Shown: one piece after another, positions 10,412-42,256 of the stretch | Layout of the letters: every line of letters begins with the position of its first letter | Position numbering within the stretch: position 1 is the stretch's first letter | Origin: Salpingoeca rosetta | Taxonomy: Eukaryota > Protista > Choanoflagellata | DNA: 64,000 nucleotides | Assembly: GCA_033442325.1 (NCBI GenBank) | Contig: JAWQFM010000025.1 | Coordinates: 871,541-935,540, forward strand | Direction: 5' to 3' | Position numbers and translations under genes: made by a program | Notes under the pieces: model-generated | Databases searched by the model: none | What the model saw: only the letters and a program-made list of their open reading frames with translations | Told to the model about the DNA's origin: nothing

Positions 10412-10900
10412 CTATTGCTTGAGCACGAGCACAGCACGCACGAGTGCGTGCGACTCCTGCGAAATCATAATCTCGCCAGCAGGCACGTTGGTGTCCTCGT
10501 TCCAGTCCCACTCGCTGTGCGAGCCAAACGGCTGTGCTTCGCCACTGAAGTTTACCACAGCCACATGTGCGTCATGGCCCGGTTTCAGACCCTGTCCCAT
10601 CAGGGTCATGTCTGTCACGGGGTACGGGTTGGCGTACACGAGATCACATACGAGCACAACGCGGTATGTGCCATTAGCGAGGTTGAGATTCTCCAAGTCC
10701 GATGGTGGCAGGCGACCATCCTGCCTGTTGATGATGCAAGGCTCGGCGTACTCAAGCGCGTAGTGCAAGTTGGGGGTGAAGTATATGCCGGTGCCAAAGA
10801 ACCCGCTGTCCCGCGTGCGCAACTGGGCAAAGCCGCCAGCAACGATGCCAACAGCAGCGTCAAAGGTCTTGACGCCATGAAACACGCGCTGAATGCGGAT
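10412..10900 (-). other. PARP-like H-Y-E clade ADP-ribosyltransferase domain (terminal exon of gene B)
   Basis: RVFHG (His 10877-10879), GFFGTGIYFTPNLHYALEYA, VVLVCDLVYANP, GHDAH, AGEIMISQ (Glu 10472-10474). Confidence 0.85.
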
Positions 10901-13900
10901 GGGTGGATCGCCTTGCAAGTGCGGGGGTGAAAGCACCCTGAACGGATGCGGCCAAGCGTGTGCATCGGCTGCGCGTGCGTCTGCGGGCGACAGGGTCATG
11001 CGTGCCAGAACGGCCCGTTGTTCCGCATCAACAGCAGCGCCAGTTGCGGTGTCAAAGGCGTATTTTGGCGCGAAACTGTGGTCTTGGTTCGACAGGTGTC
11101 GTGCTGCTCGCGTTTTGATGGCGGCAAAGAACGCGGCCTGTGCTTGCGGATTGTGCACCGCCAACGCACCCGCCACGCTGCTGGCTGCTGAGCCAATGTG
11201 CTCGTCCATCGTCTTCACCTTTCCACCCGCTTCATCCACGAGCTATACAGGTGCACATGTGTGTGTGAATGTGTGCGTGTGAATGTGTGTGAATGTGTGT
11301 ATGCGTGTGAACGGTTGAGATATTGGATGAGTGATAAAGAGCGTGTGCTTTCAATGTGCAGTCAGTGGTCACAGCATTTCCTTCACCACACGTTTCAACA
11401 AAACACGTAAGCACACACACACACACACAGACACCGACACAGACAGACACACACAGACACCGACACAGACAGACACAGACACACACACGCACACACACAC
11501 ACACACCTGCTGAATGAGGGCCGCAGACCAGTCGTCAGTTGGCAGTGGTGCGACCCGCACACCACTGTTGTTGCTCATGGTACGCATGCTTGGCTGGAGT
11601 CGTCGCAATACATCTTCACTGAACTTCCACGCTGCGTCGGCAGGGCCTGTCTCCATCTCTTGCCTGCGCGATTCCTGCAGTTGTGTCACCATGCGGGAGA
11701 AGGTGGCGCTGCTGTTCGAGTCGCCATACACCACATACGTGCGATTGCCAGCTTCATCCCCGACAAGCATCGCGCCCTCCCCAGCGTAGTCCTCGTCGTC
11801 GTCGTCGTCATCGTGGTCGTTGTTGGGGTTGACGAGATAGACGTCGCAGCCGAGGTCTCGCGCTGTTGCGGCTACGTCTCGCCTCCGCACGATGCGTGAC
11901 ACGGGCACACGCGCAGGCCGCCATTCCGAGCTGATGAGGCCGGAGAGACGTTCACGCTCGCTCGTCACATCCTCGCGATACCCGTACACCAGCACAGCCA
12001 CCGAGGTGCGTTCGTGCAGACCAGTGAGCGACGCCGTTTCGCCAACACCCGCACAGTCCACGTCCAACACCCGCTGCACGTGCTGTTGCTGCTGCTGTGC
12101 ACGTTGGCGGCGCCTTTCGCGCCGTGACCCTGTGCGACTGCTGCTGTCGTCTCCTGTGATGGTGAAGCGCACGTGCGTTCCGTTGACGGCGATGTCCGTC
12201 ACACCGTGATTGCGCTTCCAGGAGTCCAACAGCCAAGCGGTCCATACTGCGTTGTCTGCATCGCCATTGTTCTGTTCACACCAGCGAAGCCAGCGGCCGA
12301 CTTGAACAAATGACATGTGGTCGTGGCTGCCACCGTGGTTGCGCTGCGCTTGCTGCTGCGTCAGGAGGTGCCAGCCTGGTGCCACGTTGCGAGCGTACGC
12401 ACACGCGCAAGCCGACTCATCATCGCCACCATCATCGCCCCTTTCAGCGTAGTATGTCTCTGGCAGAATAACACACTCGGCAACAATGTCTTGCTCAAGC
12501 TGGCGCAGGAGAGCGGCCAGCGCTTCTTCCGCCTGTGCTGTTTGGTACCCAAGACAGGTGATGTACACGCTTGCAATACAAGGGTCCTCCCCGCTGCTTG
12601 ACGCATTCACCATGCAGTCCAGCACCTTGCCCAGGCCTTGGTCTGTCCACATGTGCAGCAAGTCGCGACGCGTGTGTGCAGGGACACCTGGCAGCGCACT
12701 GGCAAGCGGCACGCTGACCCTGCACTCGCACAGCTGCTGCTCGACAATACTTTGCAGCTCATCAATAGCCGCTTGTAAGTCGTCGTCAAACGCCGCCCAG
12801 AGGCTGATGCCGCGCGCTGTGAGCGACACCACGCACGATTGTTCGCGCCACTCAAACTGGCTGGTGTTCTGTGGCACTCGCACGTTCAGCACTTCGCTGA
12901 GAACATGTGGGTCCTGCAGCGCCCGCAAGGCAACGTCTGTAAGGGCCACCGCATCCACGCTCGTGGCAAAACGAATGCTCTCCACCAGGGCCATTTGCTC
13001 TGGCGTGAACCCGCTGCTGCGCGGGAGAACAACAACTTTCTTGGCGTCACCTTGGCTGTGAACGTGTGATGTGCGTGAAGCAACATCGAGTAGGTCAATC
13101 ACCATCAGGCCCGACGTTTCCAGTCGACGCTCAACACGACGGTTCACCATGGCTGGGAATGGCGAACTCTCCAGTACCTGTTGCCGCTGTTGCTGTTGCT
13201 GCTGCCGACTTCCTCTGTTCCCTCGCTGTCCTCCCAACTGCTGCTGTTGCTGTTGCTGCTGTGCCAGTGACCTTGCTTGGAGGCTGAGGCCGCCCAAGCG
13301 CGCGTCCTCGCGGTGCAGCAGTGTGAGCAAGGGGTGCTCGAGCATAACGGGCAGGTTTGCAGCTGGGCCGCCACTGCCCGCTGTTGAGGTGATTTGGTCT
13401 GCCAGCCGGCGAACGTGCTGCGCGTAGTCGCTTGCGTAGAGCCACAACAACCCTGCAATGCCGCTTTGTCTTGTTGGATGCTGGGCCGAAGGAGGGAGAA
13501 CGGTGGCCATTGAAGCCACAGTAGGGCAATCATCATCATCCTCCTCCTCCTCCTCCTCCTCCTCCTCCTCCTCCTCCTCCTCATCATCATCATCATCATC
13601 ATCATCCCCTCTTCGTCCTCCACCACCACCACCACCACCACCACCACCACCACCATCACCACTGCTGGCACGTCCCCTTTCTCCCTGTTCGTCACCGCTG
13701 TCATCACTGTTGCCGTACCCGGTGCTGACATACGTCCACCCAAACGCTGCTGGGGGCGTTGCCATGCCATTCACAAGGTCCACCTCCTCGTGATACATCA
13801 CGACACAGCGCACGTGCTCGCCGCACTGCACACGCAAGTGCTCCAGAAACGTGGAGAGGGCATTCGGGTGCAGGTGACGGCTGCTTGCGTACACGAGAGC

Positions 13901-14261
13901 GACGGCACTTCTGCGCTTTGGCGACCCGCTGTGCTCTTGTTGTTCATGTGTTGACATGCCGTCGCTTCCACGTTCGCGCCCGTGCTGTGCCAGCTGCTGC
14001 TCCAACAAGGTGCGCACCGCTTCTGTTTGGTCCAACACCTTCTGCAGCGTTTCCATCGCGCTGCGTTTCACATAATCGTGACTGGTAAAGATAACCGTCA
14101 CATAATCCCAGCGCACGCAACCACGATCACCACTGTTCCCGTCACTCGTGTCTTGGCCAGCAGTGTTAATGCCGGCCTTGTGTTCGCCGTCATCACCATA
14201 CCCTTCCCCGTAGCCAGAGCCAGCATGGCTGTCCACACCCACGGCGCCGTCATAATCGCAG

Positions 14262-14339
<78 letters not shown>

Positions 14340-17300
14340 CTGTAGTGGTCAGAATTGTCGTCATCACTTGCGTCTGAGTCACTGGCCTGATTGACTGCGT
14401 GAAAGTCAAAAATGGTCGCTCCCCTGCACTCAAACGCCCGCATGAGTGCAGCAAACAGATCCTCTCCCACCATCTGATGGCACACAAGCAGCGGTGCAGT
14501 GGTCATTACCAGGTCAGGGATGCTGTTCACGGGGTGGAGCTCTGGGCGACACGTCAACGCGAAAGCTTCCTTGCACACCCGTATCAGGTCACTTGCGCCG
14601 TGCACTAGCCGCTCGCTGCCGTCGACCACATGTGTGGCCATTGCTGGAAGCGGTTGCTGGGGCGAAAGCAAATCGGGCAAAGCCGCCGCGCCCGGAATGT
14701 GACCATTTCCGGCGCTCTGAGTGGTTGTGTCGTTGTCGTTGCTGCTGCTGTTCGCGTCATCCTCACCCACATTGTCGCCGTCCTCATCATCAGTCCCAAG
14801 GATAACACGCGCCCTCATACTGTCAGCCGTGACGTACGCGGTGATGGCCTGCAACAGCGCGTGCGTGTGCACCATCCCAGAAACACGTGCCACCTGTAGG
14901 ATGCGTGCGATGGCGACGTTTCTGCTTGGCCGCTCAGCAGCCGCGGCGGCGCACATGATGTTTTCCAGCGCTGGCAGTGGGCAAAACACCTTCTGCACGC
15001 GGTTCAGAAACGCACGCGGGAGCGCCATCACAGCGCTCGGGTCGTCCACAAACACGAGTCGGCAGCTGTCGTGCATGCGCGTGTATCTCGAGCGACCCCC
15101 AACAGGGATGCGCACATAGGTCCACCCGCTCGCGCCAGCAGTGACGTCTGCAGCGGTGGCATGTCCGTTGATCACATCGTACAGCGTCTCCGCAATGAGG
15201 CGTGGGGCGAGCACGACACACACGCCCGGCTGCGCGATGGCAGCCAGCAGCCGCTTCAGGTACGCTGCCCGCACGCGTGCAAGCTGCGCTGATGTCCCAG
15301 CCATGGCTGATGTTGAACGTGTGCTGCTGCCATACCCACCGTGGCCGCACAGCGCTTGCATGTCTTCATCGCTCCAGCGTGGTGCCAGCACGCGCACGCG
15401 CACGCGCGGGACAGCTCCAGCAGGCATTGACATTTGACGAGACGCCTGTGGGAAAAGCGGTTGTACTGTGGGTGACGTCGGCGCTGCTGTCATGCTCGCC
15501 TGTGCCGGAAATGACGTATCAGGCAGCTGCGAGCTCAGTGCATATGGCGGGAGTGCTGAACGGATGATGATTTGCATGACAGCGGGCGTCAGTGGGGTGT
15601 CGCTCACCATGAGCGTGTGACGCTCACGCACACCCAACGACGATGGCACGGACGAGGACGTGCTGCCCCGATTGCGTCCCGTGATAGCAGCAGCAGCAGC
15701 AGCAGGAGAAGCAGAAGCAGTCGTTGAAGCAGCCGTGTGTGCCCCCCGTGTGCCGGGTGTTGAGGGCGCACTTGAGCTTGACGCGAGACTGGTGCCCGGC
15801 TGTATCGTGGGTGCGTGGATGCTGCTGACAAGCGCTGATGTGAGGAGCCGTTCCGAGCACGTGAGTGTTTGCACACGCCTGGTCACGTCACGCCACGCAG
15901 GGCGACGCGCCACGCAGTCAATGTGTTGCACTCTGCGGTTATTGAACAGGCGGCGCATACACTCTTCAATCAGGGACGGCTGAGAGACGGGCGACACAGC
16001 GCCGAATTCGCTCATCACGGCAATCCACAAGTTCTCCACAATGCTGCGGCCTGCCTCGTCAAATCCCTCGCCCCTGTTCCTGCGATCAACGGCATCATCA
16101 CCATCATCCCCATCATCACCATCATCCCCGTCGTCGTGTTTCCATCGTGGCTTCCTCTTTGTCCGCTGTTTCTGTTTCTTTCCTCTCTTGTTGGCGGCCG
16201 TGCTGCTTCCGCTCTGTCTTTGCTGTTGCTCCGACGTCTTGCCCCTTTGCGACTTCCTGTTCTTCTTCCTCTTGTTCCCCATCACCGCTGCCTCCTCATC
16301 GTCATCCCCGTTCTCGTCATCATCGTTGTCGTCGTCCGTGTGCGTCTGAGCGCGCGCGTGTGCGCCATCCTCTCTGCAGAGGAAGAAAAAGCGACGAAGC
16401 GTGCAGTAGAGGTCGCGAAGACCGTACGCACGCTGCTCACGTGTGGGTGTCGTCGTCTGGACACCGATGCTGGCTGCTGCAGTCAACTGCTGATACAAGG
16501 CAAGCAGCTCCTGTGACATGACGCGAATGGCGTCAACGACGTCCTCCACACTCACGCCGGAGGTGCGCTGCCTGTTCTGACCTTGTGGCGTTTGATGCAG
16601 GTGTGCAATGCGCGCCACTAGTTGTGTCATGTTCAGCTGTGCCAGTTGCACGTGGTTCGAGTAACGCTGCTGCAGTGCCCGCGCCAGGCCGCATGCAATG
16701 ACAACCTTGAGGTCGTGCGTGGACGCGCTGTGGCGCAGCACCACCGTGCCTCGGTTCATCTTCGCTGCGTCGAGAAACGTGTTGGAAAGCGCAAAGAACG
16801 GGATGCGGCTTGCTCGCGGCAAGCTGAGGTCGCACTGCCGGTCCAGCAGTGCATGGAGCACCTTGAGCGTGGGCACACGACCGGAGCCGGCGTACGACAG
16901 GCCAACCTCTTCGAGCACCACAGCCATAGCCTCCTTCATCTCCTCGGCACCGCTCTGTGCGTACGTCTGTGCACGCTCAAATTCTTTCTCCAGCATGCGT
17001 GCAGAGAGTTCAGGCGAGCACTGCAGAATGTACATGGTTGGTCGCCGCAGAAGCGAGCGCACGAAATCAGCCAGTCCTGTATCAACGCTGGCATGTGCGC
17101 CGTGACCACCATCAGCGCGGTTGTGTCCACCGCCCCCACGGCGCCGCCGCCGCCGCCGTGACCTTTGCCGTCGCCCCTGCTGCTGCTGCTGCTGTTGTTG
17201 TTGTTGCTGTAGTCCTGAGTTGGCAGGGTTGTGGTTCTGTTCTGCAGAGAGGTCGAGGTTGCGAAGTGCAGCGCGTGCGCATCGAGACACGAGTGCAAGG

Positions 17301-20300
17301 CTGATGGACTTGGATGTCCCCGGCTCACCAACGAGGAAAAGAGGCAGCCCCATGTAGATGTGAAGAATCATCAGAAACACGTTCTCGCACAGGGATTGCG
17401 TCAGGAATAGTCCTTCACACGCCTCCAATTGCAGCACGTGTCGCATCGCTTCCACGCACTCAAGCAGCGGTGATAGCAGCGTGACCACAGACGGGGGTAG
17501 CTGTGCAGTGAGCGACAGGGAGAGGAGATGCTGTTCAATGACAGGGTTAATAGGGCCCGCATCAATGGGGAACGATGGCACGTCCCATGCCTGCAAGCAA
17601 AACAGTTGGCGCTTGTGTTCGGGCAGCCGCAGCAGGAACACGGTCGCCACCGCCAAGCGCGCGCACCACCACAGGTCTTTGCGACGTCCTGCATGCGACC
17701 CTGCGCCTCTTCCTACACCGGAACCATGATGCACAGCACCGTCACCGTCATGGTTTGCACCACCACCGCCGCTGCCGTGACTGCCGCTATCATTTGCATT
17801 TGCACCGCTGCTGATGTGCGCAAACTCCGCCACCAGCTCGGCCGTTCGCACCACGTCACGAACACTTGGCGGCACAAGCTCTTCCTCCCGCGCACGTGCG
17901 CGTGTCTGAGATGCTGATGGGATGCCTGTTTGGCACCACTGCAGCAGCGTTGTGTAACAGCGGGCAACCAGGTGTGCAGCAGTAACCAACTGACCCGCAT
18001 CGCAACGAACGCCTGTGCTGGCGGCGTCACCGTGACGGCCACTGGCGCCTCTATCAGCACTGACATCATCATGCCCGTCCTCATCATCTCCAAAGTGCGG
18101 CGGCTGGTGGCTGCGGTCAAGGGTGAGCGCGGTGCTCAGCGCGCTGTACGCAATGAACTGAATATCCTCTGGGGAGTTGACGTCCATCGTCCAGGTGAAC
18201 TTGCGCAGGCTCGCTGTGAGCGGCAGCACCTTGTACAGGCCCACGCGCGTGTCTTGCTCACGTGAAGGGTTGCACGCGCCAACCACCCACACGTCCTGGC
18301 GCACGTGAGCCCGGCCAACCAGCCCATCGAGCATGCACGTCTGCACAACATCCAGAACATCGCAGCAGTTGGTTTCATCCATGAACACGACCGTGGTCGG
18401 TCTGGGTGGTGGCATGCCCACGTTACGCGCTCGCTGCATCTCTGCGCCTGTTGCTGTGATGCTGTGAGACGTCAACCACTCCAGCACTGTTCGCTCCGTG
18501 TGGCTGGGCTGAAGATCCAGAATGTGCAGCTGGGGTTGGGATGCGTGCACATTCTCTCCGTGCTGCTGGTGGTGGTGGTGCTGGTGCTGCCGCCGCTGCC
18601 GCCGCTGCCGCCGCTGCTGTTGGTGACGGTGGTCCTGATGTGGCTGCTCGTGCATGAGCTCGAAGAAGACGCGAATGAGGTACGTCTTGCCAACACCGGT
18701 TTCGCCTTCGAGGATGAGGGGCAGTCGCAGACTGGCGTGCAGGGCAAGCACAAGCAGCCGAATCATCACCAGTGGAGAGAACACAAACTGAGGAAACCTG
18801 CTGATGACGCGTTCCACTGCTGCCTCACCAAAGCAGTCCTCCACCGCCCTGGCCAGCGTGGCAACGGCCCATGCATAGTCCTGCGGGCTTCGCCGCCGCT
18901 GTTGGTGCTGGTGCTGCTGGTGCTGCTGCTGTTGTTGTTGTTGTTGTTGTTGTTCGCGGCGGGCATATTGTGTGCCCAGCTGTTGAATCACAGCGCCTGA
19001 TGTGCGTTGGATGTGTTCAAGCAGCCTGCTGTTGAGCAGTTCATGGGGTGCACTCGCGCCAGCAACTGGCGGGGGTGGCGGCTGTGCACCACTGCCCGCA
19101 CCGTTGCTGTTTTCGTCGCCCGCAACACCACCAATACCACCGCTGCCATCAGCGTGGAGTGGAGCGGGGTCTGCGAGCGATGACGGTTGCACGTGCTGCG
19201 GTGCTGCCGGAGCCAGAACAACCACATCGCTTGAACGATGGCGCATGCTTGGCACAACCAGACAGCACACGTCCTGCAAGCCCCACCTGCCTCCACCATC
19301 ACCACCATGATCACCATCAACACGACCACTATCACCACCATCATTGCGCGAGAGTAGCCACTGCAGGATGCGAGCAGCACCCCACCGCTGTTCCCACAGT
19401 GCGTGTGCAGTCGAACGCGCAGCACTATCAAGCGAAATGCCTTTCGTCAGCAGCATGGATGTGTTGCTGGTGGCTGACAGCCATGCAGCGAGCGCACAGC
19501 ACTTTCGCACCAACGCAAAGTCTCCACCCAGGGCAGACATGCGTGAAAACTCATGCAGTTGCGGGGACACGAGGTCTTGGCGCGCCGCCAGCCCATGGAA
19601 CAGGCCAAGCGCTGCTTTGGAGCTATCAACGCCCGAGGTGCTGCTGTCATCACCATCGTGCTCGCCGTGTGCTTGGAACGGCGCGACGGGCAGCTCGTCT
19701 GCAAGGAACGTGACAGGTGGTGTGCGTGCATGGCCGGGAGATGACGGGGTGGCGGGGGCGGTGGCGGTGATGCCTGATGTGGTGCTTGCATGCAGTTCAA
19801 TGAAGAACGTCATGGGTTGGCGCTCGTTGCCTCGAGCCGGATCTCGCGGCGTCGGCTGCCACAGCGTGCCTGCCGCTGACCGTGCACGACCAAACAGCGC
19901 AAGCTCAAGCAGCACACGTTCCATGGCGTTGTTTGGCGACGTGTTCAGGCGCGACTGCACCCACACAGTTGATGATGGGTCGTGGGCCAGCGAGTCCAGG
20001 AACGCATTCATGTCGGCACGCGAGAAGAGCATGTGGGGGTACACTGGGCGGCGGTGAGTGCGTTTTTGTAGCGTGCGCATGTGGTGCAGCAGGCGAAATG
20101 ACTTGCCAGTCTGCGCATCGCCCTTGACTGTGCTGGTGCTGATTGACCAGTGCTCAAGCAGCTCTTGCATGGCGTCAGGCAAGTGTCGGAGCGAGTCGAC
20201 GGTCGTATCGCGTGCGGCCCCGGACGGCATCACGTGTTGGTTGAAGTTCTTGACGACAGTGCGACCGACACTGCCAGCCTTGATGACGGAGAGGAAGACC

Positions 20301-23300
20301 ACATGTGTGGTTGCGCGTCGCAGGTTCCAACGCTTCACACGCGCCTCCACGTGTTTCCACTTGCGGAAATCAAGCGGCATCACGACCACGTGCGGTGCGC
20401 GTTCCTCGCACCACGTTCCGCGCTGCTCACCATCATCACCTCCTCCGCTGCCGTGTCCACTACCACCACGGCCGCTGCCACCACGTTGCTGTTGCTGTCG
20501 CTGGGTATGCTGGCCCTGACGCCGTTTGTCTTGTTCTTTGTCAGTCAGGTAGAGCGCACGCAGGAGAAAGCGATCAAACGCATCGCTGAAACCGCCATCG
20601 CCGCCAGCAGCAGCAGCAGCAGCAGTAGCAGCGACAGCATCGTCGGTACCAGCAGCAGGGAGGTGATGGTCACAGAAGAACACGGTGTGTAGCGCAGGGG
20701 GCGCGCTCACATGCTTCAAAGCCTCCAACATCCCCGCAAACAGCAGGCGGTGTGGTGAGGACGTATCATAAAGTCTGGGCGACACGCGCACGGACACGTG
20801 GATGCACGGGGCGCGCCGAGCACCAGTTTCAGACTGCGCTGTGTTCCTGCTCATCCGACGCGTGAACGACGCCGGCAACGATGGTGGCTCTGCCTGCGAG
20901 GCCATCAGAAACTGTTGAATGAACTTGAGCTTTCTCTCGAGCAGTGCGTCGATTTTCGCCGCCAAGTCACCTGGCGCTGCGGGGCCAAGCAGGTCTTTCA
21001 CGCGCTGTGCTTCCTCGTCCCTCTTTCGCGTTGAGAAGTGCGCCTTCCAGTCGCTGTCTGCAAGAGAGCGGAGGCGCTCGCTGCTGCCAATGCACTGCTC
21101 AAGCTGTGTCAGCTGTGGCAGCGACAGGCGGAGCAGGTGGTATCGGTCTCGCAAAAGCGCGCCGCGTTGCACACGGCCGTTCATCACCACCTTCTGCCAT
21201 TGCTGCGTGTACTTTTGCAGGTGAGACAGCACAGCCTTGCACTCACCCAGTCCGAACTTGAGCAGAACAGAGGACCTGCCTTCATCCCGGCTGACCGTGG
21301 GCGTGAAGTCAAACGCATTCACGGCATTCAGGTACTTGACAGCCGCCACGATGCTCTGCAAGTGCTCCACGCTCGTGGAGACCTCCTTCAGGACCTTTGC
21401 GCTGCCATCGCGTAGGCCGCTTGCATCTGCCGACTCCATGCTTTCCTTCAGGAACGCGAAAAAGTCGAGCAGCCGCTCCTTGTCCATCACATACGTGCAC
21501 TGTTCCCCACGGACGATGGTGAAATCAGGAATCAATGGTACATGCGCACTGCCAGGGCTGCTGCTGCTGCCACCATCACCACCATCACCACCATCGCTGC
21601 TACCACTGGCATCGCTAGCGCCGGTCATGGATTCCTCTTCAAAGCGCGGCTTGCGCAGGAACAGCTGGACTGAGTTCTGCGACTTGTCCCTGAGCTTGCT
21701 CAGTTCCCGCAGGTTTTCGGCAGAGCCAACTGCCTTGCCGCTGTGCGCGCGTTGCAGATCCTGCTCCAACCGCGTGATGTCCTGACGTCGTCTGATGGCG
21801 GCGTACGATGACACATCATCATCCTCATCGTTGTCAACTTCAGCACCGTCATCAACAACAGCGGGGAGACTGTCGCTGGAACCAGCAGCAGCAGCTGCTG
21901 CTGCTGCTGCATGTACCGTATCCCTCGCTTGCGCCAGCAAGAACGATTGGTCAAAGTAGCCCAGCAGCTTGTGATCCTCGCACACCTTGCGAAGAAACAG
22001 TGGAAGCCACAGGTCACCGTCACACAACCTCCGCGCGGTCCTGTAATTGCTGAAGAGGCGCGAATACTGCACAAAGAGGTCGCCGTTCGTGTCGTCAACA
22101 CGACCTGTGCGCTGCATGATGTAGCTGTCAAACGTGTCCGTGTCAAACGTGCTCTCGTACTTCTGCAGGAGGTCAAGCGGCAGCTGCTGCATCATCGCCA
22201 CAGCGCTCAGCACCGTTCTTGGGTTCAGCGCTGGGCAGCGCATGAGCGTCTCCTCCACGTGGATGTTGACGTCGTGGTTGTCGCCGCCGCAGAGGCCAAA
22301 GTCGCGCGGGAGAAGGTTGTCGTTTGCCAGGAGGCGGGCAAGCCTTTGCAGCTTGAAGTTGCCTCGCTCCCGCGCACACCGGAGGTGCTGAACGAACCAC
22401 GCGTCACGGTACGCTGACACCTTGTCGCGCACCTTGCTTGCCGCCTGCCCCGCCCACAAGAACGTCTTCACGTCGTCGCTCTCTCGTGGCAGCAGCATGC
22501 AAGCAAACAGCACCTGTTGCAAAAGGACAGCACGTGGACGTTTCAGCCAAGCGTGCACAGCCGTGTTGTCAGTTCCGCTCATCTTTGCAATGTCTGCGTC
22601 ACTAAATACCCGGACATCTGCGCCACACAGCCTGCCCTGCATCAACTTGTCTCCAAGCTCGCGTTCGGCACGCTCCTGCTGCTCCTTCAGCGCCCCAATG
22701 TATGGCGCACTGGCGGTGGCGATGTACTCCATGGGATCGACGTGGCACAGCGCCTTCGCGAGGGTGTAGGCTTCAATACCCGTGGGTAACGAGCCACGAA
22801 CCTCATCAATCAGTTTAGGGAACTGCATGATTGGGTAGTTGGCGAGCAGCGCAGCCACTTTCCTCGAGAGCGCCGCGTGCGTGCTTGGTGTAGCCGTGCT
22901 GCCAATGAACGCTGCTGCTGCTGGTGACGACGGTGTGGGTGTGGCGGCGTCAGCTGGCAGCGTGGGCGCGGTTGAAGAGGCGCCACCCACGTGATTGGAC
23001 GCAGTGCTGATGTGTCGCTGTGATGTGGTGGTGGTTGCCATCGTCATCATCGTTGCCGCTGTTGCTGCTGTTTTTGTTCTTGTTGAAAGCATTGCCTTGG
23101 ACTCTGTCACATCGGTGAGCGTGTGCTGTGTGTCGCGTTCGAGAGCAACAAGGGCATGATAGAGGGGCGAGTTCGCCAGGGCAGTTGGCGATGCCTGCTT
23201 CAGCACGTCGCTGATGATGGTCTGAACTTTAGATGGCAGCGGCTGAATGGCCTCGCGTACAAAGTTGGCCAGATGCCCTCGAAACTCTGCCAGGGCGCTG

Positions 23301-25578
23301 TCGATAAATGGGTGACCTAAGAGCAGCAGCACATCCTCAAGGGTTGCCGACGTTGCGTGTGCGCTGCTGGTGCAATGTGTATGCAGGCAGCATTGTGGCA
23401 GGTTCACTTGTTCGGGTGAAGAAGAGTTGGTGCCAGAGGTGCTGATGATCTTCGCCACAGCGTCAAGCTGACCTTCATATTCCTCAGCTTCAGCGAGCAA
23501 GATTGCAGCGAGTATATTCGCGTCATCGTCGCTGATCGTGTGCAGCGACAGGGACGTTGCACCGTCCTCACGTGAAGGTGTTGTCGTCGTTGCTGCTGCC
23601 GTTGCTGTTGGTGTTGCTGTCGGCGTTGTCGTTGCTGCTGCTCCTGTCGTTGTTGCTGCTGCTGTCGTTGTTGTCGTTGATGCTCCTGTCGGCGTTGTCG
23701 TTGCTGCTGCTGTTGCCGTCATTGCCGTGCTGCTGAAAGACGCCAGTGCAGCCCATACAGAGCGGACACCGGTCAAGGGCGGCACCAACTTGGCAACAGC
23801 GGCCGCATCCACGCGCTTCGTGCCTTCGTATTCACGTGCAATGTCTGCGAAGTGCTCATGGATGTTGCGTTGGCAAACGTCTGCCAGGCCACACAGCATG
23901 GCACGAAAACACGGGTGACCGTTGGGGAAACACTGGGAACGTAACGGCACAAGCTGCACCGGCAGCGGTGACGCTGGAGCTGTCGCTCCAGCCGAGGTTA
24001 TCGCTGCTGCTGCTGCTGATGATGACGGCGACGATGATGTTGTCGTTGTGGTTGATGTTGATGGGTGGTGGGTACTCGTCCACCCACGCCCAAAGAACGT
24101 TTGGAGTGATGATGTGAGTGAGCCCTCTGTTTCTGGCGGCAGGACAGCAGCCACATGCTGTCGCACCGCCCGCAGGTTGGGGAACAAGGTGGTGGCAGCG
24201 TTGTCATCGTGACCACTGCCAGGGTCACCCGTCTGCGTTGCACCGCCACCGTCATCATTCCCGCTGCTGCTGTTGATGTTGTTGCTGTCGCCACCAAAGA
24301 CGTGTGTTGTGAGCGCTGTTATGACAATGCAGAACGCCAGCACCTTTTCCTCGAGCGAGGTGAGCGTCATTGCGCGTGTGAACGCGTGCGAGTGGTTGTG
24401 TGACAACAGACCAACGGCGTGCCGTAACAAGCGCAAGTCACCATGCGAAACGCCGCCACTGCTGCTGCTGCTGCTGGTGCTGTTGAGTGATTGCGCCCAG
24501 TCGTGCACGCGCTGTTCATAGCTTGTGGTGCGGAGCGCAAGGACCTCAAGCAGCAGCCGCAGCTGGTGCGTGAGCGATGGCGGCGGGGTAGTTACTGCTG
24601 TTGTTGATGATGGTGCCGCTGTTGTTGTTGTTGATGTTGATGTTGTCGTTGCTGCCGCTGTTGTTGTCGTTGTTGGTGCAGTAGTGGCGTGTGCGCTGGA
24701 GCACCTGAGCCTGTCCAGGAAAGAGGTGGCCACATGTGCACGCAACTCTTCTGGGACAACCTGCAACACATGTGCGCACGTTGCGCGGTCATGTGTACAC
24801 GACTGCAGGGACGCGTCCACCTGCGAGACCACAGATGGCGGCACGAGGGTGCGGAGCGTGCTGATGAACACGGTGATCTGGTCAGGGGACGCAAACGTGT
24901 GCACGTGCGCGGCTGCCGCTGCCACAATGGCGTTTCCAATGTCATCGTTGTGCTTGAGCTCGCGCCACACCACCGCCATTCGCCGAAAATACTCCAACAC
25001 ATGCGTAGCGGTCGTGCTCACGGCGTGAGTGGTGCCGGGCGCACTGCTTGCAAGGGATGCAACGCTGCTGCCGCTGCTGCCGCTGGTGTTGCTGTTGGTG
25101 CTGCTGTTATTGGTATTGGCATGCGGTGTAGCTGCACGCACGACGGACTGGAACTCGTTCACCACCGCCCTCACGTGGTCGTTGTTGGCGGTCTTCCAGA
25201 GCAGAAAGAAGTTCCTCATCATCATGGACACGAGCGCACGAATGTCGTCGCCACTGCCACCGTCACCACGGTCGCCGACAGCGACTGTGCCGGGGAGCGC
25301 AAAGAGCTGGCGGGCAAATATGGCCGGGTTGCTGTGTAGGTGGTCCTTCACAGAGTCGAGTTGTGTCACGTAGTTCACAACATCTGGATGAAGCAGATCT
25401 TGCAGCGGCCACCGCTCAGTCTTCTTCAGGTTTGCCGCCAGTTCTGCATGGGACGTGATTAAGTTGGAGGGAACGGGAACGGTAAGGGTGAGTCGATGAA
25501 GGCAGTAGAGAGCGTGGCATGCGTCGGCTCATCAGAATGCACATGCGTGTACAGCGGGCAAATTGCGCTCACACGCTA

Positions 25579-25621
<43 letters not shown>

Positions 25622-27684
25622 CACACGTGTCAAAACGAACGTGCACACATAAACACACCTTTCTTCACCGCTTTATCCTGGGAGAGGGTGTAGAGCAGGG
25701 CTGGGAGGTGCTGGTGGAACGCAGGTATGACTGCTTGTGCCAGCCACAGCAGCACAGTCTTGTGCAGTTTCAGGTATTCTTTGTTCGTGGACGTGCCGAA
25801 TGCACTCTTCACCACATTGGTTACTTTCGTCCACCACCACTCTTTCGCCTCTTTACCATCCTTGCCCTTGCCCTTGCTCGCCTTCAGTTCCTTCTCCAAT
25901 ATGGCGGCTGGTGGTGGATGCACGATGACAAGGGTTGCGGTCTCCACGTGCCACTGTGCCCACATGGGCAGGCCACCGGTGACTGAGTTGACTGTTTCTG
26001 GACTTATGAGGCGAACAGGCGTGGTCTTGGTCAAGTGTTGGGGAAGTGCAGAGTGTGATGACTGCGTATCACCGTGCTGTTGCTGTTGGTGCTGTTGCTG
26101 TTGGTGCTGTTGGTGCTGTTGCTGATAACGCGAGAGAAGGCGCATCGATACACCGGCGCCGTTGTGTGTGTCAGCACCGCAGTACACGGGCGTCAGCGTG
26201 CTGGTTGCCGAAGCGGCAACAGCATCACGGATCGCTGCTGACGCCTGTGCAGCGGAGGTCTTTGCACTCATGTCGCCCTTGGTGTCCGCTTGCAGGTGAC
26301 CAGTGACAATGGCAACGTGATGGGCAAAGGGTACCACTTCACGCAAGATACAGCTTGGCACATTGCTGTCAGATGGAGGTCCCGGGCTACTACCATCACC
26401 ACCATGACCACCATCGTCATCATCACCATCACCACCATCACCACCATCATCATCATCATCACCACCACCTCCATCTTCGCCACCATCACCATCATCACGA
26501 CCAACATCATCACCATCGTCATCATCATCATCATCGTCGTCTCCATCGTCACCACCGCCTCCTCCTCCTCCTCCTCCTCCTCCTCCTCCTCCCCCTCCTT
26601 GTCCGCTCACAGTGTGGGCGGTGCTGCTGTCGCTCTTGTCCCCATCACCAACTTGGGCACCTCCATCATTGCTGGGATTGGCCTGCTGGTGCTCGTCTTC
26701 CTCTTTCGGCACGTCTCCTTTCCCGCCATCACCATCACCAACACCGCCAACACCACCATCGCCAGCATCACTGCCAGCACTGCTGCATGGTGCAATATCA
26801 GGTTCCTCCTGTTGACCATTAGCCTGCGCGAGGTTGTGGTCGCTCGCCTGTGCGTCCTCGTCGCTGGCACCGCCCGTCGCGCTGACAGCCGTGTCCTTCG
26901 CTTGTTGATGGCCGTTTTCGTTCTCGTTCGTGGTGCCACCATCTGCGGGGCCAGGCACGTTTGGCACGTCAGAACTGCCAGCGGCACGATCAGGCGCGTC
27001 CTCCATTGCCACCGTCGGGGCTTGGGGGTGACCTTGTGTGTACTCCTGCCGACGTGCGACCTCCGAAGCACTTGCCTCCTTGTCTTCCTGGCTATCTTCA
27101 TGACGCTGCTGCTTTTCCTTGTCGGCAGAATCGCCACTTGTTTGCCGATCTTGTGATCTGCCTCTATTTTGCTGTCGCTGTTGCTGCCCTTGCTGCTGTT
27201 GCTGTTGCTGCCCTTGCTGCTGTTGCTGTTGCTGCCCTTGCTGCTGTTGCTGTTGCTGCCCTTGCTGCTGTCGCTGTTGCCGCTGCTTCACGCTACGGCC
27301 ACCAGTAGCGGCGTTAGCGTAGCTTCGCTTGCCATCTGTCGTACCTCGTCCGTCCATTCTGGCGCCTTTGTCTGCCCGTTTCTGGGCCCGCGAAGCCTGT
27401 GGCTGCGACTGCTTCATTGTCGTGCTGCTGCTGCTGCTGTTGCTGTCCGCACCTGCGTTGTCCACTGTTTTCTGCTCATCCTGGTGTTGTGGTGGTTGTG
27501 GTGGTGGTTGCTGTTGTTGATCGGCCTGCTCCTGTCGTTCACTGCTGTCTCGGCCTGCCTCTCTCTGCTGCTGCTGCTGAGGCTGCTGCTGAGGCTGCTG
27601 CTGTTGTCGTTGCTTTCGCTGCCCACGCTGGCGGGCACTGGCAGGGCCGCCACCGCTGCGCCCTCTCTTGTTTCTTTTTCCCAT
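10412..27684 (-). CDS. Gene B: RNF213/mysterin-like tandem AAA+ ATPase with C-terminal ADP-ribosyltransferase domain; model complement(join(10412..11242,11507..25443,25659..27684)), ~5597 aa
   Basis: GT-AG introns 25444-25658 (phase 1, G|AA) and 11243-11506 (phase 0, CAG|CTC) join three ORFs in frame, total 16794 nt. RNF213-type motifs: GDAQTGKS, PLILEGETGVGKT (18683-18706), VFMDETN, GACNP, LYKVLPL, ENVFLM..LPLFLVGEPGTSKS (17306-17329), LQCSP, VVLEEVGL, LKVLHALLD, LSNTFLDAAKMNRG, YGLRDLY, LYDVIN, PRAFLNRVQK. Confidence 0.85.
14262..14339 (-). repeat. (GAT)n microsatellite encoding poly-Asp in gene B
   Basis: About 26 TCA units on the + strand. Confidence 0.95.
14980..20800 (-). other. Dynein-like/RNF213-type AAA+ core (several AAA units, two with full Walker A/B)
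   Basis: Motif order matches the RNF213 AAA2-AAA5 series as I recall it. The second full unit has a VVLEE variant of Walker B. Boundaries are approximate. Confidence 0.85.
27177..27270 (-). repeat. 24-bp tandem repeat (about 4 copies) encoding GQQQQQQQ in the gene B N-terminus
   Basis: Unit ttgctgctgttgctgttgctgccc repeated on the + strand. Confidence 0.85.
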
Positions 27685-29283: not shown

Positions 29284-29345
<62 letters not shown>

Positions 29346-29572: not shown

Positions 29573-29659
<87 letters not shown>

Positions 29660-29730
29660 CACACACACACATACACCACGCACTAACTCCCCTTCCCACG
29701 CCCCTCCACGCACACACACGCACACACACA

Positions 29731-29769
<39 letters not shown>

Positions 29770-35700: not shown

Positions 35701-38700
35701 CTTTCTTCCAGCGCTGGTGCTGCGGCGACCTGCATCCAACGCTGCAGCGCGACACTGTCCTGGCCAGCGTGTTGTGGGCCGTGTTTCCAGGCAATCTCGT
35801 CGCTCCCCCACTGTGGCTGGTGGACGCGCCACGCAGTCAGCGGAATGCCCACATGAAGCTGCTCAACGACGTCATTCTCAAGTGCGCGTGCGAGCGCAGT
35901 CCATGCGGTGTTCACGCACTTTCCCAATTTGGCCTGACAGTGTTCCGCCCCTCCGAGGCCTATCCTTTTTCAAGCGAACACTTTACAGCGTCACTTGCCA
36001 ACAAGAGCAGCCCTCCACCCATCCTGATGCAAGAGACGGAGCTGCTCTTTCACCGCCCCGTTGTCGATAGCGAGCCTGACCTCAACCTCGCGCCGCAACA
36101 GCGCCAGCGAATCAGAGAAGCTTTGCGCGCCGTGGAAAGTTGTACTGATTTTCACGAATTCGTTCAGCAGTTCATTTGTGCTGAGGACGGTGACGAGGAT
36201 GGTAACATCAAGAGCATGTTGTCGTTGATTCTCACAGAGGGGCTCACCTTCAACTGCATCGCACATCTCGTCAAGACGGCTTTTGTCATCATCAAGGTGC
36301 GTGTGTGTGCGTGTGCGTGTGTGTGTGTGTATGTGTGTATGTGTGCGTGTGTGTGCGTGTGTGTGTATATATGTGTATGTGCGTGTGCGTGTGTGCTTGT
36401 TGTGGGGGGGGGGAGGGCTGGCCTGCTCGCGCACTTGCTTGTGTGTTTGTCTGGCACTATGGCAGTTGATAGTAATGTAACTGCGTGCTGTCTCTCTTCT
36501 CCCAACAACAAACATCATGGTCTCACCCGCCGACAAATCCTGTTGTGTCTTCTTGTTGCTCGTTCAAGGCCAAATCGATCCTGGAGGACCAGAAGGCAGA
36601 GGCGCAGCTGCACACTGAAGATGAGGAAGACGAAGGCAGGTCCACGAATGCACAATCCCACGACGCCCTGGAAAACGGGTTGGAGAAGCTAGCAGCACAT
36701 GAGACGGTGATCAGTATGTTCCTCACATCGGCCAGACTCAACTTTTCCAGTATTGTTGAAGAGGTGTTTTCGGTTGATGACAGTGTTGATGATGGTGATG
36801 ATGCTGCAAACCTGAAGGGGCGTGGCCATGGCAATGGAGACAGTGGAAATGACGAAGAAGAACAAGAACAAGAAGAAGGAGTCGAAGAAGAAGAAGACAT
36901 GAAAGACGAGGAGGAGGAGGAGGAGCAAGAGCAGGAGCAGGGTGGAGCAAGTGGTGCGCGTGCTGCCGCTGAAATGGATGCACATATTCGTTCCCAGCTC
37001 GAGAGTGCCTCCCTTGACGTCGGGTACCAGGCTGACACCGACAACCGCGACTGGACACACATTCTCATGCGCGCGTGCGAGCCTGATTCTTTCATCGAGG
37101 ATGTCACGTGTTCTGCGACACGTGTGACGAATGGCACGTTGATCGTGGATGCACGTCCCATCTCTCACGATGCCCAAGACCATTTGGAACAGCAACAGCA
37201 CCAGCAGCAACAGCACCAGCAGCAACAAGAGCATGCTTCATCCGGTGCGAAGCCGTCAATGGTTCTGTTTGGGCCGAGCTTGCTGAGCTACATGGCAACC
37301 ATCGACCTGATGTTCCGCTTCGACCCACGCTGCATCCCACGCGTGATGCGAGCCCTGCCCTACGACAAGTACAAGAACGCCGACAGCAGGATTGCAGCAG
37401 TGATGCTCGAGGTGAAGAAACACTACAAGGACACCGTGGTGCAAGTGTATCAGCTGATGTCCTCGCTGGACCAAGCGACAGCAGCGCAAGGGGAAACCCC
37501 ACAACAGGAGCTTGGAGTTGACTGCCTTCGAGAGCTGTTGAGCGCGTATGGTCAGGATGCCTGTGAAGGCATGGGGCACTTCATGGTGATTGCATCTACA
37601 GCACCCCGCCATGCGTACATGGCGGTGTTTCCACGAGTGTCTCAGCGTCTCAGTCCGCCGCCACGCGACGCTTTCAAGTCTGCCCGCGATTGCACAATGG
37701 CTCTCCGTGTACCGCTGGGTTACGAGCGACGCTATCGCATGTGCGCGCTGAGTGTTTCGGACGCCGGCACCACACATTCCCATGCCCATGCCCGTTTCGG
37801 TGACGATGTCGCAATGATGGTCAGCTCCAAGGCGTCTCGGGTGCAACTGTTCAGCAGCACGAGCAGCAGCGTGCCGCCACCGCCACGCCAGGTGGCCACG
37901 TCCGCAGCTGCGCTTGGCGGGAGCCCGAACGATGCATCCAAAGCACTGGCAGCGCTGCAATCCGCGTGTGTGTTGGATGTGCGTGAGCTCATCTGCGTTG
38001 AGCCTGATCCAGCAACGGTGCTGAACACGACGCCCGACGACCACCAAGGCGACGACTCTGAGCCCTACTTTGAGGTCAAGTGTCTGCCGGGACAGCAGTG
38101 CGTGTTGGTGAAGGATTACGCGCACGTCCTGGACAGATCGGGTAACAACAACAGGGGCGCTGGCAACGTGAACTATGCACTCAAACGTGCCTTCCCCACA
38201 GACTTTCTTCGTGTCGTGGCTGACATGAGCGCTCTGGGCGAGAACGTGGAAGTGCTGGCGGCATTTGACACCTTCCACGATGCCTGGCTCTTCCTGGACA
38301 CGCACCTCGGCTCCAAGGCCCTCGCTGTTGGGCAGAACTGTGTGCTGTACCGCACCGACATGTACAGCTGGGATGTGTCCCTCCCCGCCAGTGAGACGGG
38401 CGCAGGCAGCGGTGCTCCAATGCCTGCAGGCAACACCAGCAACGACAATCCCTTCAACGCCAATTTTTTGATGGCCTTGCACGCAGAGCTGGGTGGCTCC
38501 TTCTTGCCATCTTCTGTTGCAACCCTCTTTGAGAAGCTGTTGCGCGCGGGCGATGAAGAGGTTGCAACAATGGTCAGCTCCGCACTCAACGCATACGCGA
38601 ATGGAGAGATGGTCACCTTCAAGGGCGTGTGCGACAGTGCACTGATCGACCCCACAACACCGCACGTCGTGGAGGTGTGGAACGCCATGCTGAGCTGCCT

Positions 38701-41700
38701 CGGCACCCACCACCGCGCCATCATCCAGCTTGCGCTTGGCAGTGGATACAGCAAGGCAGAGCACAACCTGTGTCTACTGCACAAGTTGTCGCAAAGTGAT
38801 CTGATGCGACGGCAAGTGGCTGCGGGCGATGGTGGCTCAGCAGCAGGTGGCAACAGCAGCGGGAAGGGGCGGTTCAAGTTTGTTGATCTGTTGCGTTATC
38901 GCAAGGACACGCGCTCGCTGTTTGCAAAGGGGCAAACCGACGTGCTGCTGGTTGGATTCAGCACCCACATCGCGACCAAGGCAAGCCGGGATATCAACCA
39001 GCAACAGGAACAACAGCAGCAACACCGTGGTGATGCGGGCGAGGGTGAGGTTAACGCCGGCACGGACACGGGCACCACCTCCACCTCCACGACCACGCCT
39101 GTTCAGGATGCACTGTCCAAGCTCGAGCAGTGGCTGGTAAACGTGCTTGTGTCGCCACTACTGCCCTCCACCAAGCGAGGATTTGTGAACGTGATCAAGT
39201 CTGCCAACCCAGAGATGGCGCGCCTGGGTACCGATCGCAACTACTTTGTTGCCAGCCAGGACTGCGTCATTGCCATCACGCTCGCCAACAGCTGCCCGAA
39301 CGAGCGCCGTCGCAGGGCGCTGAGCAACCTCACGGACATCACAGCCAACAACCAGAACTTTGAGGAGCTTCGCACAGCCATCCGGCGCAAAGACGACATG
39401 TACGGGGTGCACGTGTGCAAGCCAATGTTCCAGCAGCTGCGTAAAGTCGGCAATGAGCTGCTGGGGCCTTTTATCGCCTCGCTCGACTTTTCCGGCCACC
39501 GTGCGGACGATTCTGATCGCTACCTCAAGATCACCTCCTGCTTCAACAGCAACTGCCACTTTGTGTACGTGAAAGGGCTGCGGCAGGCCAGCGACCTGTT
39601 CCTCAAGCGCTGCTGCGAGTTTACAGAGCAGTGGCCCTGGCGGTACATCTACTTTGAGAACCTGGACATCCGCTTCAACTTCCCCGAGATTCGGGACCGG
39701 TTTGTTGTGGGAGACCAGGATCAACTGCAGCAGTTTGTGGACGAAAACACGTGGATTCGCTCCTTCCCGCGCTATGAGGGCACTGGTGATGCTGCTGCTG
39801 GTGACGATGGTGATCGTGATGATGGTGTTGGTCGTGATGGTGATGAAGATGGTGATGATGATGTTGATGAATGGACGAAACAAGTGAAAGGGTACATCTC
39901 AAACAGCAAGCGGTGCGTGGTGCTGCTGACGTCGCCGCCGGGCGCTGGCAAAACACATTTTGCCCACGAGCTGATCCGCACTTACAACGCCGAGATTGGT
40001 GGCAACGACAATGACAAGGGCAAGGGCAAGAAGGAGCAGAGTGAGAACAACAATGGGAACAAGGGCAAGAACGTGTACTGCCACCGCTTTGACTGCAGCA
40101 ACGACAGGCTGGTGACGGAGAGCCTGTCTGTGCTTTTGGATGAGCAGTTTTCACGCCACAACGAGGCGTTCCTGGTGGCAGACGAGTTTCACTTGCTGTC
40201 GGCATCGCAGAAGGAGGAGCTGTTTGACTGGATCCGCAGCAACATGTCGCGTGTCAAGGTGCTGCTGATTGGCAATCGCGTGCTGAAGATTGACGACAAG
40301 CTCATGGACGACTTGCGTCGCGCCACCGCCCGCACGGAGAGCAACGGTCAGCAGCACGTCCAGGTGCAGAGCGTCAAAGTGCGCCTGACACCCCCGCGCA
40401 TCAGACGCATTGCGCAGCAACAACGCAACGCCAGCAAGGCAGGCGGGCAGCAGCAGCAGCAGCAGCAGTACGCGTTGTCGACACATGATTCACGTGATTC
40501 CGAGTGGGGCAAGGACTTGGAAAAGTGGTGCAGCCTGATTTACCTGCTGCTGGGGGAGGAGGCGCTGAGTCTTCGCGACATTGACGTGCTTGTGGCCGCA
40601 TTGCAGAAAAGCACGAACAACACGCTTGGTGGCATACGATCGGAGCAGGCGGCGGCGCTGTCAGCGGCCCTGCAGGCCAAGTGCCCGTACCTCTCTCCCC
40701 TGTTTGCAGACAGCCTGGGCGACGCGTTTGTGAAGCACAGAGGTGATGGCACGTTGGACAAGTTTTCCAGCGGGCTGCTGCCAACAATGCTGCTTGTGCT
40801 GATTCAGGCCATCCGCAACATGAAGTGGCGGCAACTGTGCGAGATCATGCCCTTCTCCGCGTTCTCTGCGTCGTCCGCACAGCAACAAGTCCCCGTGCGT
40901 GAGCGCTGCCGCCGCTGGCTCAAGCGCCACGTGCTGCAGCACATGGGCAAGCATGGAACGCGGGACATGCATGACATCAGCAAGGCGGTTGATGGCCTTC
41001 AGGTGAGCGCGAGTGCTGCGCGCGGTGGCAGCGCGCGGGTTGACGCGCACACGTGGATTGAGCAAGAGCCCTTCCCCTTCATCCGGGACTACGAGGACGG
41101 CGACAAGGAAGGCCTTGCCGTGGGCATTGCAGGCAACTACTCCGACATTCGCTGGGTGCAGGAGTGCGTCGTGCACTCGCGCCCCGTCAACTGGGAGGAG
41201 GCAAGTGCGTGCTGGAAGCAGAGCCCAATCACCGATCTGTCCGACTTTGAGGAGCTTGTTCGCGACTGCCCAAACAAGCTCCTTTGTCTGGACGCCGTGT
41301 CCACAGACAATCTGATTGGTCTGGCGCTCCGCTCCGAGATGATGGCAAACGGGCCTGGCCTGTTACTGCAACATATGTCCGCTGTATACACGCCGAACAC
41401 GCTACCAAAGGCGCTGGAGCCCGGCGATCACCTCCAGGACACGGTGTACAGGCACCTGTTTACCTTCTGGCGGTGCATGCTGTATGCCGTTGCACTCGGT
41501 GCTGATGGTGCTGATGGTGGTGCGGGCCATGGTACTGGCAATGGTACTCCTACCCTTGATACCGGCGATGGCGCCAAACGAACGCCCCGCACGCGGTCCA
41601 AGTGCCCGCAGTGGCTGGCAGCGTTCACGACGCGCATTCAGCGCAGCAGCGAGTGCATGGCTGCCATGTTTGCGTGGGCGGCGCAGAATGGCGAGGCGCT

Positions 41701-42256
41701 GCCACCTGTCGCCTGTGCACGTGGGATGGAGGCCAGCAACAACGAGCGCGTGCTGGACATGTTTGCTCGTTTCTGCTGGACCTTTGCCTGCGATGACAAT
41801 GCCAGCGGTGGCGGTGGTAGTGGTGTTGGCGGTGGTGGGTGGTTCGAACACGTGTGCCATGGCATGTTCATGGTGAAGATGGAGCATGTGCTCCAACAAC
41901 CCTCACGACGCGCGCAGCTGCTGCCCGCGTTTGTCCATCTACTCCGTCTCAACAAGACCACGCTTTCTGCGCAGAGCCACCCGTTCCTGCGGGCCCTGAG
42001 CTTGTTCCGCTTCCACGACAAGACGTGCACCAAGCTTGAGGACGACAAGGTGGAGCCAGACGCACTGCGTGACGATCAACGCAATAAGGCGCAGTTTGAT
42101 GGCGAACTGAAGCGCCTGTGGGGTGCTGCTCCACCTGGATGCATGGCCAGGCAGGAGCTGCGGTTTTTTGCCTCTCGAGTCCACAAACTACTGGATAATG
42201 CTACAAACAAGGAGGCCTTCAAGGAACTTCGTCACATGATCCAGTCTTGGATGTGA
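28354..42256 (+). CDS. Gene C: giant P-loop NTPase, paralogue of gene A; model join(28354..29278,29812..36296,36569..42256), ~4365 aa
   Basis: Phase-compatible GT-AG introns 29279-29811 (G|AT) and 36297-36568 (AAG|GCC), total 13098 nt. Walker A SPPGAGKT at 39932-39955, FDCSNDRLV, Walker B FLVADEFH at 40169-40192, LLIGNR. A second, degenerate module lies at about 31650-34280. Confidence 0.85.
29279..29811 (+). repeat. Intron with a 5' (GT)n block and a 3' (CA)n block
   Basis: GT-rich 29279-29425, CA-rich 29530-29805. Confidence 0.9.

Follow-up and report, generated by a model that had tools for sequence, protein, structure and literature searches.

The stretch of DNA analysed here (the window) comprises 64,000 nucleotides of the choanoflagellate Salpingoeca rosetta (contig JAWQFM010000025.1, positions 871,541 to 935,540), and on its minus strand, from position 27684 to 10412, lies a sequence that we read, with moderate confidence, as an expressed gene of three exons encoding an RNF213-like AAA giant of a separate family, which has neither a RING nor an RZ finger, ends in a lineage-specific module carrying an ADP-ribosyltransferase (ART) domain, and would use its AAA units to switch this predicted ART. 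RNF213, or mysterin, is known both as a major gene of human disease (moyamoya) and as an effector of cell-autonomous immunity; the AAA core of the protein is believed to gate a ubiquitin ligase of non-canonical type. An earlier note on the window, made from the sequence alone, had described the protein as an RNF213-like machine in which the ubiquitin ligase (E3) module was replaced by an ART; its observations are confirmed, while its interpretation is partly supported. Our literature search found no description of a fusion between an RNF213-like protein and an ART.

The DNA around the gene is GC-rich (~58-60%), eukaryotic, and holds very long open reading frames (ORFs). Between minus-strand ORFs of 707, 4,669 and 275 amino acids (aa) lie two GT/CA-repeat-rich stretches, both with GT at one end and AG at the other, and splicing the three exons produces a single open frame of 5,597 codons. 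The features of the gene, all on the minus strand, are as follows.

25659..27684, minus strand: exon 1, with the ATG at 27684..27682; 675 codons plus 1 base; basic, Q-rich N-terminus
25444..25658, minus strand: intron 1; GT..AG, phase 1, GT-repeat-rich
11507..25443, minus strand: exon 2; 13,937 nt, aa 676-5321
18683..18706, minus strand: AAA3-like Walker A, GETGVGKT, aa 2922-2929
18368..18391, minus strand: AAA3-like Walker B, VVFMDETN
17306..17329, minus strand: AAA4-like Walker A, GEPGTSKS, aa 3381-3388
16898..16921, minus strand: AAA4-like Walker B, VVLEEVGL
16709..18793, minus strand: span homologous to AAA3-AAA4 of RNF213; residues 2196-2890 of the 4,669-aa ORF, ~aa 2893-3587 of the full protein
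11621..11647, minus strand: GPADAAWKF, first conserved motif of the shared C-terminal module, aa 5275-5283
11243..11506, minus strand: intron 2; GT..AG, phase 0, GT/CA-repeat-rich
10412..11242, minus strand: exon 3; aa 5322-5597 plus the stop at 10414..10412, starting LVDEAGG; ART domain with predicted PARP fold
10877..10879, minus strand: His 5443 of the H-Y-E triad (VFHGV)
10781..10783, minus strand: Tyr 5475 of the H-Y-E triad (GTGIYFT)
10472..10474, minus strand: Glu 5578 of the H-Y-E triad (AGEIMIS)

The product of exon 1 matched no Pfam family in a Pfam scan. Exon 2 encodes an N-terminal arm (N-arm), the AAA core, a post-core region interrupted by numerous low-complexity inserts, and the initial ~47 residues of the ART module that other proteins share. 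Long inserts of this kind (poly-Q/R/H, poly-D/E, poly-G and poly-T/A/S) are found throughout exon 2 and within its conserved blocks, the AAA units included, for example at residues 2240-2280, 2715-2770 and 3005-3107 of the ORF.

That the 275-aa ORF joins the 4,669-aa ORF through the phase-0 GT-AG intron at 11243-11506, as the earlier note had claimed, is borne out by gapless homologues, by a conserved intron and by the words present in contig sets. BLAST aligns the C-terminal 577 residues of the spliced product in one segment with each of more than 20 contiguous proteins, the alignments beginning 40-90 residues before the junction and running to the end. A MAFFT alignment of 17 sequences shows no gap where exons 2 and 3 meet, and the spacing from GPxDAxWKF in exon 2 to LxxEAGG, encoded by the first codons of exon 3, equals that in the contiguous proteins. 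All three of the S. rosetta genes examined have a phase-0 GT..AG intron immediately before the Leu codon of LxxxAGG, which is the position of intron 2; these are a kinase gene followed by PTSG_08612 (locus L003), a gene for a leucine-rich repeat (LRR)-kinase-ART protein (L005) and a gene for an LRR-Roc-COR-TIR-ART protein (L004). Retention of intron 2 would end the giant frame at a stop at 11371..11369, and the T before the acceptor together with its AG makes an in-frame TAG, so that the ART frame opens exactly at the acceptor.

Among the contig sets of studies P2-P5, 0.80-0.87 of the words sampled from 10412-12400 were present, where 0.867 is expected if all exon words and no intron words occur, together with 0.00 of the unique part of intron 2 (11312-11412); the sets X1-X3, X19 and X20 contained 1.00 of that same intron part. 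This is the pattern that spliced RNA contigs (P2-P5) and DNA contigs (X1-X3, X19 and X20) would give, the kinds of run being guessed and the intron query consisting of seven sampled words only. Splicing into the ART exon, and hence a single gene, is supported by these comparisons.

We consider it very improbable that the ART ORF is instead a small independent gene that merely lies downstream of the giant gene and has a promoter of its own and a start at the Met of exon 3 codon 12. An ATG is indeed present 12 codons into the ART ORF, and the closest named relative, PTSG_08612, is annotated as a stand-alone protein of 367 aa; but this first Met lies 3' of the conserved LVxEAGG motif, which directly follows the acceptor, homology to the more than 20 contiguous proteins, which sets in 40-90 aa ahead of the junction, continues into the ART uninterrupted by any gap, and the annotation of PTSG_08612 is itself probably split from a preceding kinase gene, as described below. 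Furthermore, a second member of the family, P0001, is represented by one mRNA with both AAA and PARP parts.

The product of the last exon is modelled to fold as a PARP catalytic domain. An AlphaFold2 (AF2) model of the ART exon, built on a 35-sequence alignment, reached a predicted local distance difference test score (pLDDT) of 88.5 and a predicted template modelling score (pTM) of 0.88. A Foldseek search with this model matched 326 PDB chains at E<=1e-3, and all of the 50 best rows were PARP catalytic domains. VIA-align superposed the model on PARP10, tankyrase 1/2, PARP14, PARP12 and PARP15 with Z of 14.2-14.9 over 155-174 residues (2.4-3.9 Å), the top Z of 14.9 belonging to PARP10 (161 residues, 2.7 Å) and tankyrase 2, and the structural neighbours of the domain in Atlas all carried PF00644. 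When the ARTs of the window protein and of P0001 were compared with the PDB by sequence, nothing meaningful was returned, and the fold search alone gave matches.

The H-Y-E triad, which had been described as intact with its Glu codon at 10472-10474, is conserved as columns of the 35-sequence alignment (A3): the Tyr, in GxGxYF, is invariant, the Glu, in xEhhh, is present in at least 90% of sequences, and the His, in FHG, is present in most and replaced in a few. The window protein keeps all three (H5443, Y5475 and E5578, the last encoded by 10474..10472), and both the ART assignment and the predicted PARP fold stand. Although the domain resembles those of PARP10, PARP12, PARP14, PARP15 and TNKS1/2 in fold and in the motifs FHG, GxGxYF and xEhhh, it differs from them in having only 13-19% identity and an N-terminal extension of its own, ~110 residues in length (GPxDAxWKF ... 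LxxEAGG ...), and the window protein has no WWE, macro, SAM or PARP regulatory domain.

It is somewhat unlikely, in our judgement, that this PARP-like domain is a pseudo-enzyme, serving to bind NAD+ or ADP-ribose or in a structural role while the output of the protein lies elsewhere. Such a role would be consistent with the sub-threshold Pfam score of the domain, with the loss of the His in a few members of the module family and with the shortened ART of P0001, which is without the Glu. Conversely, H, Y and E are all present in the window protein, the Glu and His being retained across the aligned module sequences to the extent given above, and the confident model reproduces a PARP-like fold over 160-170 residues.

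An exhaustive HMMER search with the ART exon returned 217 representatives at E<=1e-3, among them 27 at E 1e-57 to 1e-24, and in most of these 27 the match spans most of the 275-aa exon and stops at the C-terminus of the protein. The nine best representatives were scanned for other domains: seven are kinase proteins (four with LRRs), one is an LRR-Roc-COR-TIR protein and one an ankyrin-repeat protein, and the module is C-terminal in each; two of the nine correspond to annotated genes of S. rosetta. Among named proteins PTSG_08612 of S. rosetta comes closest (43% identity), and none of the collections searched contains a protein identical to the window protein. The shared module measures ~320-335 aa, proceeds from GPxDAxWKF through LxxEAGG to the H-Y-E ART, and starts ~47 residues (~40-90 by BLAST) upstream of intron 2. 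PTSG_08612, the LRR-kinase-ART protein (P0007) and the LRR-Roc-COR-TIR-ART protein (P0008) of S. rosetta are 43-55% identical to the window protein over the whole ~335-aa module and their genes share its internal, GT/CA-rich phase-0 intron before LxxxAGG; unlike the window protein, the S. rosetta module proteins have as their N-terminal scaffold a kinase, ROCO-TIR or ankyrin protein of 600-1,700 aa in place of an AAA giant. Judged by homology, the module is a promiscuous C-terminal effector cassette, the same module ending choanoflagellate LRR-kinases, LRR-Roc-COR-TIR proteins and ankyrin proteins.

The idea of effector swapping by exon shuffling, put forward in the earlier note, survives in so far as the module is a swappable C-terminal effector. 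However, the terminal exon as the shuffled unit was rejected: homology begins inside exon 2, ~47 residues upstream of intron 2, and the boundary of the module is therefore not that of the exon. The intron is internal to the module and recurs at the same position and phase in three S. rosetta genes whose N-terminal parts differ; the module therefore spread as DNA, intron included, and not by recombination within intron 2. Both introns of the window gene (11243-11506 and 25444-25658) and the introns of L003, L004 and L005 are full of GT/CA (and CT) microsatellites, from the GT donor on.

At L003:6147-12178 (S. rosetta GL832978.1) an annotated kinase gene (578 aa) is followed by a 'PARP catalytic domain-containing protein', PTSG_08612 (367 aa). 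The final coding stretch of the kinase gene reads ...DAVTE|GT at nt 9664/9665, and the ART exon runs from an AG at ~nt 10398, beginning LVHAAGG. Since the upstream half of the module closes the last exon of the preceding kinase gene and is followed, at the homologous codon, by a GT donor, PTSG_08612 is probably the 3' part of a split gene, and the two annotations together probably represent one LRR/kinase-ART gene. A frame change at ~nt 9615 of this locus, between ...VDAT and QRVHIAPL, could be a small intron or an error.

Kinship of the AAA core to RNF213 is specific yet distant and, on the alignments obtained, confined to the two Walker-bearing units at ~ORF residues 2196-2890. Pfam returned AAA matches to the core below threshold only. 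In a phmmer search of the 4,669-aa ORF against all PDB sequences, by contrast, RNF213 entries were matched at E 1.9e-13 and every match down to E 1e-12 was RNF213; the other rows were three SRP68 chains at E 0.002-0.004, matching a low-complexity stretch. A two-sequence profile matched RNF213 alone in the PDB, at E 3e-20. The matched blocks comprise Walker A and B of AAA3 (GETGVGKT; VVFMDETN), Walker A of AAA4 (ENVFLMI..PLFLVGEPGTSKS) and, again in AAA4, Walker B and the motifs that follow it (VVLEEVGL; SN..LDAAKMNRG). Both units have an intact Walker A; their Walker B motifs contain DE (first unit) and EE (second unit). Alignment of the core with P0002, a 4,649-aa RNF213-like protein, by hhalign gave a probability of 99.3% and E 3.5e-20 over 489 columns at 26% identity. 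The Atlas feature neighbours of the core are AAA_5/AAA_7 proteins, including an RNF213-named cluster, and two metagenome scans with alignments of the AAA core (A5 and A6) returned no relatives. The description of the core as 'strongly RNF213-like' consequently needs qualification: the match to RNF213 is specific, but 'strongly' overstates a distant similarity that involves two Walker units only.

RNF213 itself (PDB 6TAX, 6TAY, 7OIK and 8S24) is comparable to the window protein in being a giant of ~5,000 aa with a long N-terminal arm and two consecutive AAA units bearing Walker A/B, and in the motifs ENVF..PLFLVG.PG.SKS, VVL[DE]EVGL and SN..LD.AKMNRG. The differences are that identity is ~26% over ~500 aligned residues, that the second Walker B is E-E, and that the window protein is without a RING, RZ finger, detectable E3 module or C-terminal domain (CTD), its C-terminus being a PARP-type ART.

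A second member of the family was found by a word-based search with the AAA core. P0001 (E 2e-126, 32% identity) is a protein of 3,402 aa encoded by a 10.7-kb polyA-tailed mRNA contig from two runs of one project (SRR14727189 and SRR14727191). It is collinear with the window protein over five high-scoring segment pairs, with 32% identity in the AAA core, contains no RING or RZ pattern, and has a PARP-like end that scores 34.2 bits against Pfam PARP, above the gathering score. Its ART (L001:10003-10342, residues 3290-3402) is a miniature, with ~95 residues from His to stop; it is of another subtype and has no GPxDAxWKF-LxxEAGG extension. P0001 is much shorter than the window protein because it is without low-complexity inserts, and the inserts of exon 2 would account for much of the gap between 3,402 and 5,597 aa. 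Thus, as far as sequence can tell, two highly divergent species combine an RNF213-like core with a PARP-like C-terminus, a recurrence that may reflect inheritance, exchange or gain on two occasions.

P0001 also bears on the origin of the window protein. We think it unlikely that the latter is an RNF213 orthologue in which the E3 module was secondarily replaced by an ART. Similar size, a long N-arm, the placement of the two Walker units and the exclusivity of RNF213 among PDB matches at E<=1e-12 would be in keeping with orthology. Yet P0002, in which a Pfam RZ finger is present, reaches RNF213 at E 1e-105, where the window protein reaches 1e-13 to 1e-20, and P0001, very divergent at 32% identity, has the same RING-less, PARP-ended layout, which points to an old separate family. 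The window protein is better read as one of a separate family of RNF213-like AAA giants than as an edited RNF213 orthologue, because it stands ~90 orders of magnitude in E-value farther from RNF213 than does P0002 and because P0001 shares its RING-less layout. The proposal that an E3 module was 'replaced by an ART' is therefore not supported as stated, P0001 also being without RING and RZ and PARP-like at its end, and homology to the E3 module or CTD of RNF213 having been neither found nor excluded by the searches made.

The absence of a RING or complete RZ finger after the AAA core, which the earlier note had reported, extends to the whole protein. No CxxC occurs anywhere in its 5,597 residues, nor does a RING pattern or the pattern C-x(2-4)-H-x(8-25)-C-x2-C; Pfam E3 families (RING, U-box, HECT and IBR) were not matched by the whole protein at E<=0.01 or by the last 1,165 residues of exon 2 at E<=1. 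The RZ finger family PF20173 was likewise not matched by the window protein, although the same scan finds it in P0002. The RZ zinc site has the form C-x3-H-x15-C-x2-C with a catalytic Cys/His pair (10.1101/2025.10.14.682297). Given that no CxxC, RING or RZ pattern is present, a zinc-dependent RING or RZ finger is excluded at the level of sequence patterns, an exclusion that does not reach a zinc-free fold.

A zinc-free domain, U-box-like or new, might be concealed in the ~1,100 residues that separate core and ART, in which case the window protein would still be an E3 and perhaps a dual ubiquitin/ADP-ribose machine like DTX3L-PARP9; we regard this as decidedly unlikely. RNF213 and ZNFX1 provide precedents for non-canonical E3 domains (10.1101/2025.10.14.682297). 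The post-core region has no assigned fold, and since its AF2 model, built from P0001:2380-3290 with the window row, had a pLDDT of 30.9 and was unusable, structure excludes nothing here. A word-based search with post-core residues 3400-4620 and a profile search of the region gave no match. Against a concealed E3 are the lack of any Pfam E3 family even at E<=1, of any hhalign match to the C-terminal 2,000 aa of the RNF213-like P0002, of any usable match in an Atlas feature search of P0001 2440-3290, and of any CxxC in the protein; in addition, the ART of P0001 follows the estimated end of the ring by ~540 aa, as opposed to an estimated ~1,700 aa in RNF213.

We return, therefore, to the three-exon, AAA-switched ART giant. 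The window protein would be a member of a family of giant AAA+ proteins, small and hitherto undescribed, with a PARP-like domain at the end and no RING/RZ ubiquitin-ligase finger, in which the two nucleotide-binding AAA units probably share descent with AAA3 and AAA4 of RNF213, and in which the C-terminal ~320-335 residues would be a lineage-specific effector module with a conserved internal phase-0 intron. In RNF213, ATP binding to the AAA3 and AAA4 units gates ligase activity. By analogy, nucleotide binding by the AAA3/4-like units of the window protein may act as a switch that controls or positions the C-terminal ART and so drives it, and the ART would then use NAD+ to ADP-ribosylate a target or the protein itself. 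ADP-ribosylation of targets by the window protein instead of ubiquitylation is a reasonable inference. The setting is likely to be one of conflict or immunity, because sensor-like scaffolds share the ART module.

Several observations weigh against this reading. The Pfam PARP family (PF00644) scores 21.1 bits on the ART, under its gathering score of 26.7, as for a divergent subfamily. In the ART of P0001, which is short and bears only a weak similarity to that of the window protein, the catalytic Glu appears to be replaced by Asp (GTDVLIF), so that a common ART-bearing ancestor of the two is no more than a possibility. Similarity to RNF213 spans ~500 aligned residues of 5,597, and the alignment is limited to the AAA3-4 span plus one weak block (ORF 3387-3466), which falls short of a six-unit ring. 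The AAA4-like Walker B has E-E where RNF213 has D-E, a feature also found in P0001 (IVLEEMGM, ~residue 2035). Finally, the N-arm and the ~1,100 aa between core and ART were without a match in the searches made, and the contig-word test carries the guessed run kinds and small intron query noted above.

The left neighbour (window 8-9769, plus strand) encodes more than 3,253 aa and runs off the window; it has weak AAA matches and a clear C-terminal vWA domain, but its identification as midasin was rejected because it has no PDB match at all. It has three common blocks, at 26-35% identity, with the ORF at 36485..42256, and the two are therefore paralogous NTPases flanking the ART gene. At window 29241-36692 (plus strand) is a 2,483-aa ORF transcribed divergently from the ART gene; it matches no Pfam family, and its residues 50-215 have a weak match to dynein heavy chain (E 1.3e-6).

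An RNF213 relative with a PARP-type output would show that the giant AAA scaffold is separable from ubiquitin chemistry, and the predicted ART would offer a second, easily assayed read-out, namely NAD+ consumption, of how an AAA core controls its effector. Occurrence of the ART module with its internal intron on ROCO-TIR, LRR-kinase and ankyrin scaffolds documents that an effector cassette was shuffled at the level of DNA in unicellular organisms closely related to animals, and the analysis points to a split in at least one S. rosetta gene annotation. RNF213 acts on lipopolysaccharide, a non-protein substrate. A broader and rather doubtful possibility, which we raise tentatively, is that the AAA3/4 switch of RNF213 type is an ancient chassis, open to reuse, by which targets are marked, and that one branch of it, in unicellular relatives of animals, drives a NAD+-dependent ART in place of a ubiquitin ligase, possibly on pathogen-derived or non-protein substrates, having exchanged its effector end with the pool of ROCO-TIR and LRR-kinase ARTs; if true, this would imply a pre-metazoan innate-immune toolkit built around ADP-ribosylation.

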